Shown: in pieces, positions 23,040-61,165 of the stretch
Layout: every line of letters starts with the position of its first letter
How positions within the stretch are numbered: the first letter of the stretch is position 1
Sequence record: NC_049850.1
Length of the DNA: 64,000 bases
Reading direction: 5' to 3' (one strand)
Program-made: the position numbers and the translations under genes
Notes under the pieces: model-generated
Databases searched by the model: none
What the model was told of the DNA's origin: nothing
What the model saw: only the letters and a program-made list of their open reading frames with translations

Positions 23040-23423
23040 ATGCGTGCAACTCATGCAAAGCTTGAAGTCACGGGAGACCGCAGCGCCCTTATCACGGCCG
23101 ACATCCTAGCGCGCTTTATCGGCAGCGAAATTACGTATCTCGCGGACTTGGTGGACGACACGCAACCCCTGCGAGTCGTAAACCTGCGCTTCCGTGGTGA
23201 TCTCGCAGACCTGCACGGTGAAAAGATCATGCTGCCGTTCGCGGATGCAGTTCGCGGCGGCAAGGCTCTCGGGCTGCTCATCAAGCGCATCAACTGCGCG
23301 ACGGCGCAAGTGGGCTATGCAGCACACAGTTTGGTTGATCAGTATGATGGTGCAACCGTGGACACCGATGCGGAAACCGGGAAGATCGTGGTGACCGTAC
23401 GACTTCAAAGGAGCCGAGCATGA
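23040..23423 (+). CDS. hypothetical protein
   Basis: GGAGG SD. Confidence 0.75.
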   Translation: MRATHAKLEVTGDRSALITADILARFIGSEITYLADLVDDTQPLRVVNLRFRGDLADLHGEKIMLPFADAVRGGKALGLLIKRINCATAQVGYAAHSLVDQYDGATVDTDAETGKIVVTVRLQRSRA

Positions 23424-23953
23424 CGCCACGACAACGCGAAAACGCGCGGCTCGCAATCGATCAGGGCAATCGCTACCCGCCCGACAGCCTGCAAACCGCT
23501 CACTGGACGCTGGACGCGGCTCGCGGTATCATCCACGATCTGAGCGACCGTGGCTCGTTCGATGACGCGCTGGACAAGTGCGATCAGGCGGTTCTCGACG
23601 AAATCACGGTCGCGATCCAGAACATCATCCGGGTCGCGCACGCCTCTGTTAGCGAGCACGCGGATCAGCCGCCCTCAGCCACCGATGCGGCCATCGCGCT
23701 GGCGCATGAAGCCCAGTCGGCCGTCACCTCGATCTACGCTACGCATTTCGGTATCGGTGACGTGCAGTGGCATGAGGACATCGAGCGCGAAACTGGGCTG
23801 GACGAGCACGACCGTCAGGAATTGCAGGAGGCACTGGAACAGCGTTTCAGCGCCGTGTTCGACGAGCGCGAATTCGAGGCGTGCCGCACGGCCAGCGCTC
23901 TCGTCGCCTTTATCGTCAAGAACCTGTTGCCGTTCGAGGTCGACCGTGGATGA
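23420..23953 (+). CDS. two-domain protein with C-terminal ACP-like domain (no Ser)
   Basis: ...IERETGLDEHDRQELQEALEQRFSAVFDEREFEACRTASALVAFI; Glu where AcpP has GADSLD. Confidence 0.65.
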   Translation: MTPRQRENARLAIDQGNRYPPDSLQTAHWTLDAARGIIHDLSDRGSFDDALDKCDQAVLDEITVAIQNIIRVAHASVSEHADQPPSATDAAIALAHEAQSAVTSIYATHFGIGDVQWHEDIERETGLDEHDRQELQEALEQRFSAVFDEREFEACRTASALVAFIVKNLLPFEVDRG

Positions 23954-34870: not shown

Positions 34871-36751
34871 CTAGCTCTTGAGCGCGGCACGCCGGTTCTT
34901 CAGCAGCGCAATTTCCGCCTCGATCTCGTGGTTGCCGGGATCGCGTTCCAGCTTCTTGTTGAGACGCACGATCTTGGCGCTGAGGCTTCGGTACAGCTTG
35001 ATATTGTCGCCCATGGATTCAGCGAACCTGCTGCTGCGTGCCGCCTGATTGACGACGCGTGCTTCGTGCTTCTCCTGAGCCGTTGCCCCGTTGTACGACC
35101 AGCGGTGCATTGAGCCCAGCGCCTCAGTCGTGTCGACCGCGATCTTCGGGTAGTTGTGCATGCGGGCCCGGACTTTTTCCGCAAGCCCCATAGTCGACAC
35201 AATGGCCAACATACGCTTCTTCGTGTTGTGGTTCCGAATGTTCCCGCGACCAAGAGACTGGATCGCCTTGTCGACCACATAGTCCTCTGCCACGTCATAG
35301 TCAGGCAGCAGCGCGGTCAGCAGTTGATCGAGCAGCGGTGGCGGATTGATGGCGGCCAAGAAGGCAACGACGTTCGAGTGCATGAACTCGTTACGTCCCT
35401 CGACGGCACCCACGCTCAGGTGATGGTAATACTTGCGGTTGAACGCGTGGCTCAGATACTCCTTGTTGACGACGACCACGCCCTGCTGCACCACGTTGTC
35501 ACGTTTGACCGGAGCATTGTCTTTCCACCACGACTTGATCAATCGGTTGCTGGATTTCACCATCCACGCAAACACGTCGACCTCGCACCCGATTTCGCGC
35601 ATGTACGATTCGAGTTCGATTTGCTCGGGTTGCAGAATCCCCTTCTGCACGTCGGGATCGCGTTTGGCCCGCACCAAGTCCTGCAAGTGCTCGGTCGTCA
35701 CACCCAACTCTTCCATCTTCAGCTTGAACGGCATCAGCTTTTCCACCGGCATGATGACGCCGCGATCCAACTGGTTCTTGCTCGGCATCGCCTTGTCCAT
35801 GAGAAGTGGGACAATCGTCAGCTTCTCGTATCGGGCACTGACCTCCGAATGGGCCTTACCAAAACCGCCCGGCAGATGCTTGTTCAGGAATCGGTCGGTC
35901 TCGTTCTGGACTTGACAGCCCTCCATCTTCAGCAGGTGGTACATCTGACTGTTCTCGAAGTCGGCACTCATGATCATGACGCTCTTGAAGCCCACGAACG
36001 GCTGGCTGGGCAACGTGATCCCGATGAACGAGCGCTTGGAGCCGTGGCCACGGAACGATCCGAACATCTGCATGCGCACCGGCCCATCATCACCAGTACG
36101 CAGCGCGTCGTATATGTTGACGAGCGTGCCAAACGACCGCGCGTCGCCCTTCATCTTCACGAGACTGGCCAACCGGTTTGCGGGCAGCGAACGCGCGCGC
36201 AGCGTCATCAGGCCCTGCGCCTTCTTCCCGGTAACGCTGACGAGTTCTTCGGTATCGAACAGTTGGTGGAACAGGCGCTCGGTGGGCTCGTCGAACGTCA
36301 TGTTCATGTTCTCGGTCACCCACTTGCGCGACTCGTCGAATATGACAGTCGTTTCCTTGAACTTCGGGTGTCGGCGCAACTTGATGAAGGCCGCGTGTGT
36401 CAGGAACAGAATCGAGCCCGGCAGAAATGGGAGCGGGGCCTTGGTGTCAGTCGAGCGCCCGTCGAGCGCGGCCCGGATTCTCTCGTCGACGGTGGCCGTG
36501 GTCGACGTGTGTTTGTCGGCCGAGCGCGCGTACTCAGCACGTATCATTCGCTGCTCGTTCTCGTCGAGCAGGGCCCGGAGATTACCCAGCGTCTGACGCA
36601 ACAGGGCTTGGGTCGGAGCCACGTAGAAAATGTAGCCCGTGCCCTTGACGCCCCTCATGCCACGACGGATGTGCTTGGCCATGAAGTTGACGGCGGCCCG
36701 AGTCTTGCCAAGTCCGGGAACGCCGGACACGTATTGAACGGTAATGGTCAT
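34871..36751 (-). CDS. SF2 helicase-domain protein, possibly origin-binding/replication initiator
   Basis: VSGVPGLGKT (I), YVAPTQAL (Ia), LTHAAF (Ib), IFDES (II), MSADF (III), EGRN (V), QSLGRGNIR (VI); start taken at MTITVQ; origin-binding role is inference. Confidence 0.8.
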   Translation of the reverse strand: MTITVQYVSGVPGLGKTRAAVNFMAKHIRRGMRGVKGTGYIFYVAPTQALLRQTLGNLRALLDENEQRMIRAEYARSADKHTSTTATVDERIRAALDGRSTDTKAPLPFLPGSILFLTHAAFIKLRRHPKFKETTVIFDESRKWVTENMNMTFDEPTERLFHQLFDTEELVSVTGKKAQGLMTLRARSLPANRLASLVKMKGDARSFGTLVNIYDALRTGDDGPVRMQMFGSFRGHGSKRSFIGITLPSQPFVGFKSVMIMSADFENSQMYHLLKMEGCQVQNETDRFLNKHLPGGFGKAHSEVSARYEKLTIVPLLMDKAMPSKNQLDRGVIMPVEKLMPFKLKMEELGVTTEHLQDLVRAKRDPDVQKGILQPEQIELESYMREIGCEVDVFAWMVKSSNRLIKSWWKDNAPVKRDNVVQQGVVVVNKEYLSHAFNRKYYHHLSVGAVEGRNEFMHSNVVAFLAAINPPPLLDQLLTALLPDYDVAEDYVVDKAIQSLGRGNIRNHNTKKRMLAIVSTMGLAEKVRARMHNYPKIAVDTTEALGSMHRWSYNGATAQEKHEARVVNQAARSSRFAESMGDNIKLYRSLSAKIVRLNKKLERDPGNHEIEAEIALLKNRRAALKS

Positions 36752-48265: not shown

Positions 48266-48563
48266 CGGCAATCCTGAAAACGAATTCGGTCTTGACACTG
48301 GGACGCAGGATCACGTCCGCTGCGTACACGATGTCGCCTACATGTCCTTCACGCAGGTACTGCACGCTGTCAATCAGCTTGATCGCGGCCACGATTTCGC
48401 GGTCTCCGGATTCGCCCTCCGAAAACAGGGCCGCCGAGCCCAAATATGTAGTCCAGTACGGACTGCCGTGATCGGTGGCGTACGCGAAATACAAGAGGCG
48501 GCCGTTTTGCTGCTGACACACGAGCATGCGTTTCAGCGGCGGTTGCTTGAATTCAATTGGCAC
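48252..48563 (-). CDS. hypothetical protein
   Basis: Coupled ORF. Confidence 0.7.
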   Translation of the reverse strand: MPIEFKQPPLKRMLVCQQQNGRLLYFAYATDHGSPYWTTYLGSAALFSEGESGDREIVAAIKLIDSVQYLREGHVGDIVYAADVILRPSVKTEFVFRIADADE

Positions 48564-49092
48564 CGGAGCCCCCGCACACTTTGTTGATGAGGTCCCAGTA
48601 CAGATCGATCATGAGTTCCGCGATCTCGTAGACCCGGTGGAAGCCCATGAAATCCTCCAGATCGACTGCGAACAGGGATTCGAGGTGCTTCTTCACCATC
48701 TGGTACGCTTCGTCCGTGTAGCCGAGATCGGTGTACAGATCGTCGGAAAGGCCGATGTAGAACGTCTCGGCCCGCTTGTTCGGACAGTTGTAGCACAGGA
48801 CACCGCGAACCACGGTCTTCACGAATTCCGCGACTTCCACACGGTTGGCCACATTCGGATACTCCACGTCATAGAACGGGAACACGGTCATGTAGTACTT
48901 GCCGTTTTCCAGAACCGTGAACTTGGGGTTGGGCGTCACGATAACGCCTTGATCCTTGACCGGCTCCTTGTTGGGGCCGACGCCTAGCGCCGCACCCCAC
49001 GCAGCCTGAAGGTCGGCAGGCAGGATGTAGCCACGCACTTGCAGCACTTCTCGGTGGTAGCGTTCCCACCACTGTTCGAAATTTTCAGCCAC
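48553..49092 (-). CDS. hypothetical protein with N-terminal FEQWW...AAW module
   Basis: GGGAG SD, GTG start. Confidence 0.75.
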   Translation of the reverse strand: MAENFEQWWERYHREVLQVRGYILPADLQAAWGAALGVGPNKEPVKDQGVIVTPNPKFTVLENGKYYMTVFPFYDVEYPNVANRVEVAEFVKTVVRGVLCYNCPNKRAETFYIGLSDDLYTDLGYTDEAYQMVKKHLESLFAVDLEDFMGFHRVYEIAELMIDLYWDLINKVCGGSGAN

Positions 49093-51495: not shown

Positions 51496-51672
51496 TTATT
51501 CAAAGTCGTCTACATCAATGTCGTGGCCGAATCGGTCGCGCTCGCGAGCCTCTTGATAGCCGTTCTTCCACTCGTACCAGTTTTGCGTTTCCTTCTCATA
51601 TCTGTTGAGGCGGCGTCCAGCGTCACCGTACTTCAAATACGCGTTAAAACCTTCCTGCTCAACCGTGTTCAT
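51496..51672 (-). CDS. RMF/CrpP-fold-like small protein
   Basis: EQEGFNAYLKYG...LNRY...WYEWKNGYQEA. Confidence 0.65.
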   Translation of the reverse strand: MNTVEQEGFNAYLKYGDAGRRLNRYEKETQNWYEWKNGYQEARERDRFGHDIDVDDFE

Positions 51673-52001
51673 CAATCTCCCTTCCCGAATTCCTTGTTTA
51701 CCATATGGGCCCACAGGTCAGCCTCTATCTTGGACCTGAATGTCAGCATCCCATTTTCACCGCTGGGCCACCAGTCGCGTGTATACGCGTCGTTCTTGAA
51801 CACGGTCAGGCGCTCTACACACCACACCTTCGCGTTCAGTGGATGCGGTGCCGGGCACCACGGCCCGCGCATCAGCACCTCGTGCTCCACATCCTGCGTG
51901 GACCCGAAATCTACCAGCCCATTTTTCCACACGCAAGTACCGCACCCACCGTTCTTGGCACGATACTCACATGTTTTATCCTCTATGCAAAACTGAGCCA
52001 T
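51672..52001 (-). CDS. Cys-rich hypothetical protein
   Basis: FC...CEY...GCGTC...WCP; TAATG overlap. Confidence 0.7.
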   Translation of the reverse strand: MAQFCIEDKTCEYRAKNGGCGTCVWKNGLVDFGSTQDVEHEVLMRGPWCPAPHPLNAKVWCVERLTVFKNDAYTRDWWPSGENGMLTFRSKIEADLWAHMVNKEFGKGD

Positions 52002-53854
52002 TACGTGGCCTGTTGTGCATCCAGCACGCTATTTACCATGTCCTGCGGCGTTACCCAGTTGGCGACTGCCGCCAGCGGAATGTCGATGCCGAACTCGGAA
52101 TTCAGTTCATCCCACGCCATTTCCATGTCCATGCTGTCCCAGCCGTAATTATCACACAGGCATGAATCGAGTCCGACGCCAGCAGCAGCCGAATCCACGG
52201 TGGCTACGGCCTTCAGCACGCGCTGAGTCAGCAGCTTCGCGGTATCGACCTTCGCGGCAGTCGCCTGCGCCTGCTCCTTGGCACGCAGCAGCTTCACCAC
52301 CGTCTTCACCACGTCCGCCACCGTAGTCCAATCCTCTGCGTCCTTCAGCGGGATGTTGAGGCCGAACCGACGATCCAACGAGTACGCGAGGTTCATGCGC
52401 GAGTGGTGGTAGAAATTGCAATCGCACTGGAGGTGATCCGTGTACGACAGGCTTTCACCGCCGCTCTCGTTACGCATGATGTAGCCACGAATGTGATCGA
52501 ACGCCTGTTGCGCATCCGAAACTGCCACCTTATCAGCGTACTGCGATGCGACTTCAGAAGCGACCTGTACGGCAAAGCGATTCAGCGCGATCTGTCGCAG
52601 CACGTCGGCCACCACATCCGACACCAGTTCCCAGTCCTGCGTCGTGTGATCGAGCTTGATCGAGAACGCGTCGTTCAGGCGTTGCACCAGTTGCTCGTCG
52701 TACTGACCCGGGTACAGGTGATCCAGATTCGAGAGGATACCGATGGAGGGCGCGCGTTCCAGCATTACCTTCGACGCGTACTCTTCAGCCACGGCTTTGA
52801 TGTGCTCCGCGACCTTCCAGAAAACGGCTTCCGACAATTCGGCCGGGCTCAGTCCGTCAAACGGCATGCAGGTGCGTGCAATCTCGATCAGATCGCGGTC
52901 GATATTCAGCGCCCGTTGCACGTTCTGTTCCGCTGCGTCCAAGACAAAGCCGTCCTCTTCATCATCCTCGTCTTCGTCTACAACGTCATCTGCGTCACGC
53001 GGCAGATCGTCGTCACCGTCCGGGTCACCCTTGTCGTCGATGCTGTCGTTCTCGCGCAGACGGCCTTCGCACGCGTCAATGATGTAGGCCACGATGTCGT
53101 GGATCGTGCACCAACTCGTGTACTCGACTTCCGGAGCCAGAGCCGCGTAATGGTCGGCAATCGAATGGCTCATCGTCTGCATGTTCACGTCCGTGAATCC
53201 GAATTTGCTGCGGATGTGCGTGCTGCTCGACAATTCATCGTTGCGATCCACACAATCGAACGTGGAAACCATGCCAATCACGAACCACAGGGTCGGCAGG
53301 TAGTTGGCGTCGCGGGCCGTATGCGTATTGTTGAGTGCACCCTCGTACACGCCATTGCAGCCTTCGAGGATACCGAGCACCGCGTCGTTCACCGTGACCC
53401 AGCGATCCGGGTGCGCGCCGAGATCAGCGTAGCTGCTACGCAGGCTGTTGCGCAGGCGGCAGCGGTCTTCCTCGCCCATTTCGAGATCGAACGCGAGGTA
53501 GTCGGTCGGCATCACTTCCGGGTCCGTCATGTCGTGCTCCATGATCGAGCGGATGATGACTTTCACGACCTCCAGCACGTTGTGGTGGTTCGGATGCGTG
53601 ATCTGCGGAGGCGCTTTCGAGGGCGACGGGCGCACAGGCGTCGGCTTGGCCGGAGTGTCCAGCATGATCGTGAACTTCTCTTGGTAGCCACCCACGGTTT
53701 CGAGAACGCCCAGCTTCCGGCCCATGAATTCGAGGCCGCTGACCGTGGGCTTTTCCTTGATCTCGTTGAAGAACGATTCTTCGCACTTGCCCCAGTCCGT
53801 CCAGTTGCCGTTGTTGAGGCCACGAACGCGGTATTGGTAAACGATGTCAGCCAT
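52001..53854 (-). CDS. 617-aa protein with five tandem ACP-like domains; only the last has the GxDS motif
   Basis: Last domain GWDSMDMEMAWDELNSEFGIDIPLAAVANWVTPQDMV matches AcpP (GADSLD...[23 protein letters not shown]); four upstream repeats end in W-x-(T/L)-(V/I)-x-D-(A/V/I)-V. Confidence 0.85.
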   Translation of the reverse strand: MADIVYQYRVRGLNNGNWTDWGKCEESFFNEIKEKPTVSGLEFMGRKLGVLETVGGYQEKFTIMLDTPAKPTPVRPSPSKAPPQITHPNHHNVLEVVKVIIRSIMEHDMTDPEVMPTDYLAFDLEMGEEDRCRLRNSLRSSYADLGAHPDRWVTVNDAVLGILEGCNGVYEGALNNTHTARDANYLPTLWFVIGMVSTFDCVDRNDELSSSTHIRSKFGFTDVNMQTMSHSIADHYAALAPEVEYTSWCTIHDIVAYIIDACEGRLRENDSIDDKGDPDGDDDLPRDADDVVDEDEDDEEDGFVLDAAEQNVQRALNIDRDLIEIARTCMPFDGLSPAELSEAVFWKVAEHIKAVAEEYASKVMLERAPSIGILSNLDHLYPGQYDEQLVQRLNDAFSIKLDHTTQDWELVSDVVADVLRQIALNRFAVQVASEVASQYADKVAVSDAQQAFDHIRGYIMRNESGGESLSYTDHLQCDCNFYHHSRMNLAYSLDRRFGLNIPLKDAEDWTTVADVVKTVVKLLRAKEQAQATAAKVDTAKLLTQRVLKAVATVDSAAAGVGLDSCLCDNYGWDSMDMEMAWDELNSEFGIDIPLAAVANWVTPQDMVNSVLDAQQAT

Positions 53855-53887
53855 GTGTTGTGCTCCTGAGAAGTTGTCGATCCGTGA

Positions 53888-53916
53888 ATAATACGGAAAA
53901 AGGGCCTTGGAGTCAA
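53888..53916 (-). promoter_or_regulatory. sigma70-like promoter of the multi-ACP gene; -35 box lies in the terminator loop
   Basis: TTGACT-N17-TATTAT, then 6 nt and ATCGAC. Confidence 0.75.
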
Positions 53917-53932
53917 CCCCCAAGGCCCTTTT
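53898..53932. terminator. bidirectional Rho-independent terminator
   Basis: AAAAGGGCCTTGG-N9-CCAAGGCCCTTTT. Confidence 0.85.
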
Positions 53933-53945
53933 CATTTACTGCTGG

Positions 53946-54566
53946 TTACGCGCGACGAAGCGGCAGGTCCTTCTTCACCAGACCTTCCGGAACCGGCAAC
54001 CGGTTCGCGTACGTGCGGATCAGGATGAAGGTCAGCACACCACCCGACAGGATCGAGGCGATCACCAGACCGATCACGAGCAGCGCAATCGCGGCCTTGG
54101 GATCGTCGCTGTCGAACAGGTCGACATCACCGAAGAAGTCTTTCACTCCGGAGAACGCACCGCCCACGTTCTGGAACGCGTTGTACATGTTGTAGGCTTG
54201 TGCGAACGAGTTGTACGCCGCGCCGCCCATGCTCAGCAGACTTCGTTCACGATACGCCACGATCCACGAATGGATGGTGATGATGAGACCGGAGCCCAGT
54301 GCCGGGAAGATGATCAGCAGATACCACAGATTCATTGCTGCCTGTGCGGCCGTGGCAGGCAGGTAGCCGAACTTGTAGAGCACGGCACCCATGATGAAGC
54401 CGAACACACTGGAAAACCCGACCACCGACTGGATGGCCGCCGACCACGCGAGGACGCGGGAGAAACCGCCCACGCCCTTCGACTCGTTCCAGATGCCACC
54501 AACCGCGTAGCAGTTCCACCACGAGATACCGAAGTTCAGGACGAGAAGCAACACGAGCATGAACAT
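53946..54566 (-). CDS. multi-pass membrane protein
   Basis: About five hydrophobic segments; AAGGAGG SD. Confidence 0.8.
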   Translation of the reverse strand: MFMLVLLLVLNFGISWWNCYAVGGIWNESKGVGGFSRVLAWSAAIQSVVGFSSVFGFIMGAVLYKFGYLPATAAQAAMNLWYLLIIFPALGSGLIITIHSWIVAYRERSLLSMGGAAYNSFAQAYNMYNAFQNVGGAFSGVKDFFGDVDLFDSDDPKAAIALLVIGLVIASILSGGVLTFILIRTYANRLPVPEGLVKKDLPLRRA

Positions 54567-59995: not shown

Positions 59996-60039
59996 TTAAT
60001 CGATTCGTGAATTCTACGCAGCTACCGTAACCGTGTCAA
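59996..60039 (-). promoter_or_regulatory. sigma70-like promoter with ATCGATTAA at the predicted +1
   Basis: TTGACA-N17-TAGAAT-N6-ATCGATTAA. Confidence 0.85.
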
Positions 60040-60572
60040 GCGTTCGACACAAGGCCACAAATCTTGTCTTTCTGTTCTTGGCACGTCTTCAGGATCGCGG
60101 CCACCAGCGCCTTGTGGGTCTTGCTCAGTTTGCGCGAGCGCACGAGCGACAGCATCAGGTCTTCCGTGTCCGAGATCATCTTGAGGGTCGGCTGATCCGA
60201 CACGTTGTGTAGTCGGTCCGCGAGCTTGACGACCAACCCGTAGCTCGACAACCCACGCACCTTGTTCTTCTGGTACGCGAGCTTGCCCAGAATCTTGATC
60301 TGCACTTCGTCGTTCGAGAGTTCGAGAACGATGCTGGCCACCAGCGGGCCGAATCGGGCAACCAGTTCTTCGAACGTGGTGACCGTATCCTCCAGAATGT
60401 CGTGGAGAATAGCGGCGGCCAGCAATTCGGGCAGCTTTTTCGATTTCTTGTACGCCGCGACAATGTACGAAACGGCCAGCGGGTGCGTGATGTACGGGTC
60501 ACCGGAACCACGGCGCACTTGGCCCGCGTGTTTTTCGTTGGCGAACGCGATTGCGTCGAGAATGATCTTCAT
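60036..60572 (-). CDS. stand-alone HD-domain (p)ppGpp-hydrolase-like protein (Mesh1/SpoT-HD family)
   Basis: AIAFANEKHAGQVRR..GDPYITHP, AAAILHDILEDT, VKLADRLHN. Confidence 0.88.
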   Translation of the reverse strand: MKIILDAIAFANEKHAGQVRRGSGDPYITHPLAVSYIVAAYKKSKKLPELLAAAILHDILEDTVTTFEELVARFGPLVASIVLELSNDEVQIKILGKLAYQKNKVRGLSSYGLVVKLADRLHNVSDQPTLKMISDTEDLMLSLVRSRKLSKTHKALVAAILKTCQEQKDKICGLVSNA

Positions 60573-61165
60573 GCAGCCTCCTTGAGTTTGGGTAGCCAGT
60601 AACCGATGCCCGGCAGATGATCGAGAATAATAGCACTCTTGTCCCGGGGACGCAACGTCCCGATCATCAGGCGATGGCGCACGACCATGAGCAAACGACC
60701 CAAGTGATTGGCACCTACGCCACCGCAGCGGCCCCAATGCTCGTCACCGTGACGATTCGTTTCCTCAAGGTGCGCGGGCCACGTGTCGACAAGGCGCTGG
60801 GCCAGACGCGGGTCCACGAACTTGGCGCAGAGCACCGTGTACATCACCTGATAGCGTCGCTTCTCGTTCCAGTCAGCGGGCAGGCGTGCGGTGTACCCCA
60901 CGCGCTTCGCGTTACCCGGAGTCCGCGCTTCCTTGATCTTTTTCTTGTAGGTAGGCCGCGAATCCTTGTGCCACATGTACCAGTGCTCGGAACTGGGTAG
61001 CAGCATACCGAACAACGAGACGGGCACGCCATCGTAGAAGTTCGACAGGAATTCGTACTCGTCGTAGAACCCGTGGACGGGTGGAAAGTCTGGATCGTAC
61101 GAATACGGAAGCGGGGTAGTCACGTCAATTCCACGTGCCACCCCAGAATAGCCTTTGATCTTCAT
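60569..61165 (-). CDS. NADAR family hydrolase
   Basis: FLSNFY, SSEHWY, AKRVG, W...RYQVM...AKF, LEETN..DEHWG, NHLGRLLMVVR. Confidence 0.9.
   Translation of the reverse strand: MKIKGYSGVARGIDVTTPLPYSYDPDFPPVHGFYDEYEFLSNFYDGVPVSLFGMLLPSSEHWYMWHKDSRPTYKKKIKEARTPGNAKRVGYTARLPADWNEKRRYQVMYTVLCAKFVDPRLAQRLVDTWPAHLEETNRHGDEHWGRCGGVGANHLGRLLMVVRHRLMIGTLRPRDKSAIILDHLPGIGYWLPKLKEAA

Follow-up and report, generated by a model that had tools for sequence, protein, structure and literature searches.

A phage protein with five repeats that point to an acyl carrier protein origin and a single predicted attachment serine: gp422 of Burkholderia phage BcepSaruman

The window analysed here is the last 64 kb (right end) of the 263,735-bp genome of Burkholderia phage BcepSaruman (MK552140), a jumbo phage of the genus Sarumanvirus whose host is B. 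cenocepacia; window coordinates are those of the record minus 199,735. One of its genes, gp422 (BcepSaruman_422, QBX06835.1), encodes an acidic protein (pI 4.5, net charge -55) that consists of an N-terminal segment, a Pro-rich linker and five carrier-protein-derived repeats, here called units 1 to 5, with acidic or helical linkers between them (Table 1). Our comparisons point to a common origin of the five units by intragenic duplication of an acyl carrier protein (ACP) domain. As aligned, neither the attachment serine nor the acidic recognition helix of ACPs survives in units 1-4, whereas unit 5 keeps both and is, by every profile applied to it, a bona fide carrier domain. GenBank lists the product as "hypothetical protein", and the automatic UniProt name, as shown in the BFVD match list, is "Carrier domain-containing protein"; the C-terminal carrier domain had therefore already been flagged by machine annotation, but the repeat architecture had not. 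An initial annotation, made from the letters of the window, had described a protein of five ACP-like units of which only the last could be modified, and its literal statements (positions, translation, motifs, the codon of Ser574 and the Pro-rich linker) all proved correct when the sequence was read again.

The evidence for ACP ancestry is strongest at the C terminus. The Pfam PP-binding model (PF00550) matched residues 544-608 with 31.2 bits in the whole protein and scored 21.4 bits on isolated unit 5, above its gathering threshold (GA) of 20.8 bits. Unit 4 reached 13.8 bits and fell below that threshold, and units 1-3 and the N-terminal segment gave no Pfam match, so that the comparison with this profile proposed in the initial annotation bore out unit 5 and not the other four. 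ACP models of NCBIfam matched residues 470-521 and 544-609, and the phmmer matches of gp422 in the PDB were ACPs together with the doublet ACP of PigH. When single units were compared by hhalign with a profile of five PDB ACPs, unit 5 (94.8%, E 5e-8), unit 4 (94.5%, E 8e-8) and, over its full length, unit 2 (49.6%, E 1.7e-4) were recognised, but units 1 and 3 singly were not significant.

The remaining units are tied to the carrier proteins through one another. All blastp matches between units were in register (unit 4 versus 5, 3e-7; 2 versus 4, 8e-5; 2 versus 5, 3e-4; 3 versus 4, 0.015; 1 versus 4, 0.027), and a hidden Markov model (HMM) built from units 4 and 5 alone recovered units 1, 2 and 3 in register within residues 1-439, with a sequence score of 13.1 bits on that part of the protein, while the best of 1000 shuffles reached 6.0. 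An HMM built from five PDB ACPs ranked gp422 first among 2899 six-frame open reading frames (ORFs) of the phage (E 5e-13), and its five envelopes coincided with the five proposed units. In leave-one-out hhalign comparisons, each tested unit was aligned with the other units plus the five ACPs and with 60 shuffles of itself; unit 1 (90.8%, E 1.2e-6, 76 columns), unit 2 (94.7%, E 5.9e-8) and unit 3 (42%, E 2.6e-4, 68 columns) each beat 60 of 60 shuffles. A profile of units 1-3 had a single match in the PDB at E values up to 10, the full-length ACP 8gsa_A (E 0.16), and aligned with the five PDB ACPs over 66 columns (71% probability, E 3.7e-5). Moreover, adding units 1-3 to the profile of units 4 and 5 raised the number of PDB ACP matches at E<=1 from 65 to 110 and the best PDB score from 26.8 to 31.8 bits; the ACP signal thus grows and is not diluted, which counts against a chance resemblance. 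The five ACP-like units of the initial annotation are therefore upheld by shuffle-controlled tests, units 1 and 3 by transitivity because neither is significant alone against ACPs; the assignment of unit 3 rests also on a structural model with a pLDDT of 70 and weak Foldseek E-values (below). Units 1-4 as a group are related to carrier proteins solely through profile-profile or transitive comparison.

The alignment also bears on when the repeats arose. Their C-terminal motifs, at residues 151, 247, 407, 508 and 599, follow the last-helix pattern W-x-T-x-x-D-x-V, in which W, D and V are invariant across the five units. This Trp is missing in the five PDB ACPs and in two other ACP-like proteins of the phage, gp119 and gp347, which suggests that the duplications took place within the gene after its divergence from ordinary ACPs. 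A recent duplication at the DNA level is rejected: Tandem Repeats Finder detected no tandem repeats in gp422 DNA, and the sole trace of a DNA repeat is a 21-nt pair of 76% identity (52431-52451 and 52716-52736), 285 nt or 95 codons apart, that encodes the loop motif LSxxDHL in units 4 and 3. The empty DNA-level search, like the failure of units 1 and 3 to reach significance singly against ACP profiles, would be expected if there were no real repeat at all and helical segments ahead of a single C-terminal ACP domain resembled it by chance. However, the shuffle-controlled scores lie far over background, the matches are in register between units of equal length that share the invariant W/D/V motif, and units 1-3 both strengthen the ACP signal and have an ACP as their one PDB match; chance likeness is thereby close to refuted, and we give it almost no weight.

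For unit 3, the most diverged repeat, an AlphaFold2 model of residues 336-430 was built from an eight-row alignment of the gp422 units and two other ACP-like segments of the phage (predicted local distance difference test (pLDDT) 70.1, predicted template modelling score (pTM) 0.55). The predicted helices, at positions 7-29, 52-62 and 76-93 with a long loop behind the first, have the layout of the carrier-protein topology. In a Foldseek search of the PDB, the approximately 26 best matches of the model were almost all carrier proteins, among them T. maritima ACP (1vku), AntF, PigG, DltC and PltL, with template modelling (TM) scores of 0.5-0.67 and probabilities of at most 0.90. In BFVD, gp422 itself headed the matches of the model; phage ACPs followed, among them one from Siphoviridae (E 0.018) and the carrier protein of phiCbK (TM 0.60/0.66).

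The claim that the canonical attachment serine occurs in the last unit only agrees with the alignment, which places Glu, Asp, Gln and His in units 1-4 and Ser574 in unit 5 at the position of the ACP serine (Table 1). Ser574 lies in the motif GWDSMD (residues 571-576) at the start of helix II, and the corresponding segments of units 1, 2 and 4, MGEED, FTDVN and FYHHS, begin at residues 126, 220 and 481; unit 4 has a serine one residue past the site (Ser485), not in a DSL context. The net charge of the segment from Ser-3 to Ser+15 is 0, -2, -2 and +2 in units 1-4 and -6 in unit 5, compared with -3 in unit 5 of the orthologue in phage BcepSauron and -4 to -8 in the five PDB ACPs. ACP partners recognise and dock on the acidic helix II, and thus just unit 5 resembles AcpP at the interaction surface.

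This distribution of charge bears directly on the function that the initial annotation had put forward, a multivalent decoy: each of the five domains would imitate AcpP, and together they would titrate ACP-binding proteins of the host or defence factors. Such a decoy would fit the presence of five ACP-fold units in one acidic polypeptide and of further serine-less ACP-like proteins in the phage, of which gp119 retains a strongly acidic helix II. A passage in PMC3896788, citing Keating et al. 1995, describes apo-ACP as an inhibitor of glycerol-3-phosphate acyltransferase and a potent growth inhibitor, and a contact between a phage ACP and FabZ has been predicted computationally elsewhere (bioRxiv 10.64898/2026.03.01.708874). 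However, without an acidic helix II in units 1-4 the protein would offer at most one AcpP-like domain, and neither unit 1 nor unit 3 can be recognised as an ACP by itself. As to MukB, one of the partners considered, we know of no use of it by Burkholderia, which we count against a decoy. SpoT, another suggested target, does not bind apo-ACP according to a passage in PMC3896788 that cites Battesti and Bouveret, so the serine-less units would not be expected to capture it. We therefore do not favour the decoy in this form and regard it as quite improbable.

The evolutionary evidence comes from the single orthologue of gp422, in BcepSauron (MK552141, 250639-252492), which is 94% identical. It is annotated "peptidase (M16)?", a name that we reject, since a Pfam search to E=10 gave PP-binding alone and NCBIfam gave ACP models plus one weak chance match. 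Other BcepSauron product names nearby look doubtful (translation elongation factor, transposase and DNA polymerase III alpha on small ORFs). The two proteins differ at 35 residues, 2 of them within residues 1-528 and 33 within residues 530-587, a stretch of unit 5 that runs through helix I and the loop into the start of helix II. Across this patch synonymous sites are saturated, and yet G571, W572, S574 and D576-W581 are kept; the motif at Ser574 reads GWGSVD in BcepSauron, with the serine conserved. Because synonymous sites are saturated and comparable divergent patches occur in the same locus of approximately 20 kb (at about 43.0-43.2, 45.0-45.2 and 59.0-60.2 kb), the patch must have been exchanged by recombination for a far diverged allele of an unsampled relative. 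The same saturation, the low dN/dS (the ratio of nonsynonymous to synonymous substitution rates; Table 1) and the patches elsewhere rule out diversifying selection or a diversity-generating retroelement as the source of the hypervariable patch. As Ser574 survives this divergence at a dN/dS of about 0.24, it is probably functional, and its survival across the patch is the best evidence at hand.

In mitochondrial complexes, ACP paralogues without the serine act as structural subunits, and gp422 might likewise be an exapted helical-repeat scaffold without ACP biochemistry, possibly in the virion, in which Ser574 is incidental. Four of its five repeats are degenerate, serine-less mitochondrial paralogues (8iuf NDUEG11/12) are among the PDB matches of the gp422 unit profile, and an ACP has been detected by mass spectrometry in virions of Erwinia jumbo phages (Eneladusvirus; PMC7760394). 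Nevertheless, we consider a pure scaffold unlikely, given that unit 5 exceeds the Pfam threshold for PP-binding, its motif being intact and its helix II acidic, that purifying selection acts on this unit across saturated divergence, and that gp422 is remote from the structural modules and sits in a block with many sigma-70-like promoters.

Tentatively, and with less than even confidence, we propose instead that gp422 is an adaptor for early host takeover: a host phosphopantetheinyl transferase (PPTase) would load its terminal domain, which would engage host ACP-dependent enzymes. It would be an accessory protein of Sarumanvirus jumbo phages, probably expressed early; as the phage has no recognisable PPTase, unit 5 would receive its 4'-phosphopantetheine from one of the host. 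Loaded unit 5 would then dock on host ACP-dependent enzymes of fatty-acid, phospholipid or lipid A synthesis in competition with AcpP, and units 1-4 and the N-terminal segment would form a spacer or adaptor scaffold with new partners rather than act as AcpP mimics. The net effect would be a takeover of host lipid metabolism, not a phage biosynthetic pathway. The inhibition of glycerol-3-phosphate acyltransferase by apo-ACP, cited above, is a precedent for harm to growth by a form of ACP. Host loading and docking on host enzymes make the most economical reading because Ser574 is under purifying selection and neither a PPTase nor partner enzymes of the phage are recognisable. Pfam detected no PPTase, ketosynthase (KS), acyltransferase (AT) or adenylating enzyme among 37 neighbours, and no KS, AT, ligase or PPTase is listed in the GenBank annotation of the whole genome. 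The pair of motifs that marks PPTases, (V/I)G(V/I)D ... (F/W)(S/C/T)xKE(A/S)xxK, occurs in 0 of the 2899 six-frame ORFs of at least 50 residues, which is a weak test, and the lone motif match, gp037, has no PPTase match in Pfam. The earlier remark that no PPTase or synthase gene lies nearby thus holds for the neighbours and, as far as motif scan and annotation reach, genome-wide.

The same searches bear on a further possibility, that unit 5 is a dedicated carrier of an acyl, aminoacyl or other group for unrecognised phage enzymes, for example for modification of the envelope, a virion component or DNA. The retention of its serine under purifying selection would suit such a role, as would the downstream gene gp421, whose ATG overlaps the gp422 stop codon in a way that suggests translational coupling; in addition, most phage genes are of unknown function, and ACP modules have been described in jumbo phages (PMC13573597). 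On the other hand, no adenylating enzyme, KS, AT, acyltransferase or PPTase appears among the 37 neighbours or in the annotation, nor a PPTase in the motif scan, and gp421 is an orphan with no family, no PDB or other structural relative and no sequence relatives, on which ground we reject it as a partner enzyme or PPTase. A dedicated carrier therefore seems to us rather unlikely.

Several points weigh against the host-takeover adaptor and the repeat architecture on which it builds. The full-length AlphaFold2 model, from a two-sequence alignment, is unusable (pLDDT 37, pTM 0.25), so that an ACP fold is assigned to unit 3 on a model of moderate confidence and to units 1, 2 and 4 from sequence. 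The unit 3 model is itself supportive rather than independent proof, because its alignment included units 4 and 5, and its Foldseek E-values are 0.2 or higher against the PDB and no better than 0.018 against BFVD; the structural check suggested at the outset thus returned carrier proteins as the top matches of unit 3 but at weak significance. Moreover, gp422 is an orphan of two near-identical phages, and conservation is uninformative outside the mosaic patch. A word-indexed search of about 5.8 billion proteins gave the BcepSauron orthologue as its sole relative; an exhaustive phmmer search of 1.84 billion representatives gave nothing beyond it, nor did tblastn of 50,697 phage records, queried both with the entire protein and with unit 5 by itself. 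No third lineage came to light when IMG/VR, JGI metagenomes and GTDB genomes were scanned for sequence patterns. A profile search with the unit alignment gave zero matches because of the limits of its word index. Carrier-using enzymes could also hide among the roughly 85% of genes that are hypothetical, and the ACP in Eneladusvirus virions makes a virion role of gp422 possible.

The genome holds other ACP-like domains. Outside the window, on the minus strand at 69003-69254 of the record, lies gp119 (83 residues), which is annotated "acyl carrier protein-like protein" and had 61 PDB matches at E<=1, of which the 60 listed were all ACPs; its motif FDDLDLTDFLMALEDEF (FDDLDL) has Asp at the serine position and its helix II is very acidic, which makes it a candidate stand-alone obligate apo-ACP mimic. 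It lies near NAPRT, cytidyltransferase and NAD-ligase genes. The hypothetical protein gp347 (177 residues, 23420-23953, plus strand) has an ACP-like C-terminal part (about 23738-23929) that scored 19.3 bits with Pfam PP-binding, just below GA, and matched a PDB ACP (E 5.8e-4) and PHROG 5934 (E 1.2e-4), with Glu at the serine position in the motif GLDEHD. Residues 87-145 of gp415 (179 residues, 48553-49092, minus strand) resemble the gp422 repeats, with GYTDEA at the motif position; hhalign against the gp422 repeat profile gave E 3.5e-4 and a score of 27 versus a shuffle maximum of 14.6, but comparison with pure ACP profiles was not significant, which makes this a weaker case than gp119 and gp347. 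Our searches with these three proteins returned no relatives outside the genus Sarumanvirus. BcepSaruman thus appears to hold about eight ACP-fold domains in four proteins, of which just one would be loadable, as judged from its predicted serine. Asp or Glu stands at the serine position in 5 of the 7 serine-less domains; we do not claim this as a phosphomimetic pattern, since D and E abound in the motif itself and the alignments may be off by 1 residue either way.

These proteins might together form a Sarumanvirus family of obligate-apo ACP mimics (gp119, gp347, gp415 and gp422) that shuts down or re-routes host ACP-dependent lipid synthesis. The idea would draw on the eight ACP-fold domains, 7 of 8 of them serine-less and often with Asp or Glu in place of the serine; targets could be, for example, AcpS or glycerol-3-phosphate acyltransferase, by analogy with over-produced apo-ACP in E. 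coli. gp422 would be its polyvalent, partly re-specialised member, anchored to the host fatty-acid synthesis machinery by its one loadable domain. We regard such a family as improbable.

Phage ACPs of a single domain and megasynthases with tandem ACPs are already known, and gp422 shares features with both. Bacterial and mitochondrial ACPs (PF00550; AcpP, NDUFAB1) align over their full length with unit 5 and, apart from the serine, with unit 4. Unit 5 also shares with them the G-x-D-S-(L/M)-D motif where helix II begins and the acidity of that helix. Canonical ACPs, however, are single proteins of approximately 80 residues, whereas gp422 joins five units to an unrelated N-terminal segment; serine and acidic helix are missing from four of these units, and all five have a family-specific Trp in the last helix. 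The tandem ACPs of polyunsaturated fatty acid (PUFA) synthases and some polyketide synthases (PKS) and the doublet ACP of PigH (5y08), whose PDB match spans units 4-5, resemble gp422 in having carrier domains head to tail. To our knowledge, every ACP in those arrays keeps its serine and the array lies within or beside KS/AT enzymes. In contrast, gp422 has one serine in five units and no synthase domains by Pfam in the protein or its 37 neighbours. Closer in setting are the single-domain phage ACPs of PHROG 5934 (phiCbK, Achromobacter phage Motura, Ralstonia phage RP13, Eneladusvirus), carrier domains of unknown role that are classed as auxiliary or host-takeover genes. This family is matched by units 4 and 5, gp347 and gp119, and the unit 3 model resembles several of its structures; its members are single domains of approximately 80-100 residues, as opposed to five repeats, and no multi-repeat relative of gp422 beyond the BcepSauron orthologue was present in the protein, phage, IMG/VR, JGI and GTDB collections searched. 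The likeness to serine-less ACP paralogues of protist mitochondrial complexes, which have retained the carrier fold after loss of the site, is one of fold alone. In the databases and literature searched, we did not find a stand-alone protein of five ACP-fold repeats with one intact site in a phage that has further serine-less ACP-like proteins.

Phage-encoded ACPs are widespread and without demonstrated function, and BcepSaruman offers a natural dissection of the ACP domain, with one loadable copy and four degenerate ones within a single chain and three serine-less copies elsewhere. If any copy inhibits host lipid or cofactor metabolism, ACP mimicry would be established as a phage takeover strategy, and small proteins that inhibit type II fatty-acid synthesis in bacteria would be at hand; otherwise the gp422 locus would simply illustrate how rapidly accessory genes of jumbo phages can duplicate internally and decay.

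Table 1. Features of gp422 and its immediate surroundings, in window coordinates (pS, proportion of synonymous differences).
Feature	Position	Strand	Remarks
gp422 coding sequence (BcepSaruman_422, QBX06835.1)	52001-53854	minus	617 residues (52004-53854) plus stop; 100% identity to MK552140 251736-253589
N-terminal segment, residues 1-66	53657-53854	minus	no recognisable family in Pfam and profile comparisons
Pro-rich linker, residues 67-91 (TPAKPTPVRPSPSKAPPQITHP...)	53582-53656	minus	
Unit 1, residues 92-171	53342-53581	minus	degenerate carrier-protein-like repeat; Glu129 at serine position
Unit 2, residues 184-267	53054-53305	minus	degenerate carrier-protein-like repeat; Asp222 at serine position
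Acidic linker, residues 269-303	52946-53050	minus	D/E at 20 of 35 residues
Extra helical segment, residues 304-340	52835-52945	minus	outside the repeats
Unit 3, residues 341-427	52574-52834	minus	most diverged repeat; Gln384 at serine position
Unit 4, residues 444-526	52277-52525	minus	clear ACP homologue without the serine; His484 at the site; helix II basic
Unit 5, residues 538-617	52004-52243	minus	carrier domain; GWDSMD and acidic helix II
Codon of Ser574	52133-52135	minus	predicted 4'-phosphopantetheine attachment site
Mosaic patch, residues 529-588	52091-52270	minus	180 bp; pS 0.70 (saturated synonymous sites), dN/dS 0.24
Shine-Dalgarno AGGAG	53863-53867	minus	8 nt before the ATG at 53854-53852; read from sequence
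Sigma-70-like promoter TTGACT-17-TATTAT	53888-53916	minus	0.04 expected by chance in the window; consensus-level evidence
16-bp hairpin and T-run, intrinsic-terminator-like	53897-53933	minus	ends upstream gene gp423; overlaps the -35 element
gp421, 109 residues, Cys-rich	51672-52001	minus	its ATG and the stop codon of gp422 share 1 nt

The promoter of its own that gp422 had been credited with is matched by a sigma-70-like element directly upstream (Table 1). Its TTGACT lies in the loop of the terminator-like hairpin, within which an alternative ORF of 644 residues begins; the GenBank start is 53854. Between 44001 and 64000 there are 14 sigma-70-like elements on both strands against 7.5 +/- 2.8 expected; 12 of the 14 are on the coding (minus) strand, several of them at gene starts. 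This enrichment fits transcription by the host RNA polymerase and, together with the element ahead of gp422, speaks for an early or accessory role of the gene, at the level of promoter consensus. Elements of the form TTGACA-17-TAnnAT lie on the minus strand at 60039-60011, 55576-55548, 47379-47351, 46196-46168 and 45812-45784, and a second 16-bp hairpin with an overlapping promoter, as upstream of gp422, is located at 46187-46153.

In the GenBank annotation, gp422 sits far from the structural modules, at the end of the genome, in a leftward block of approximately 29 kb whose roughly 65 genes are for the most part small and hypothetical. Pfam matches among the 37 neighbours were two Imm_superinfect proteins, Phage_g100, NADAR, HD/HD_4, DUF3302 and an Osmo_CC coiled coil, and nothing else, which gives the neighbourhood, as far as these families tell, an accessory, host-interaction flavour. 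The HD and NADAR proteins suggest anti-defence or alarmone control. The HD_4/HD and NADAR matches probably belong to gp436 and gp437, two adjacent genes on the minus strand at about 60036-61165; HD_4/HD is the SpoT-type hydrolase, guanosine pyrophosphohydrolase in GenBank, and BcepSauron names the second gene of the pair "GTP cyclohydrolase II". Directly upstream of gp422, gp423 (206 residues, 53946-54566, minus strand) matches PHROG 37671 (function unknown) with E 1e-76; unlike gp422 it is conserved among phages by this match, and by eye we take it for a putative multi-pass membrane protein. Farther away, the hypothetical protein gp381 (626 residues, 34871-36751, minus strand) has an N-terminal region with DEAD/ResIII-type helicase motifs (Pfam DEAD 28.6 bits, GA 26).

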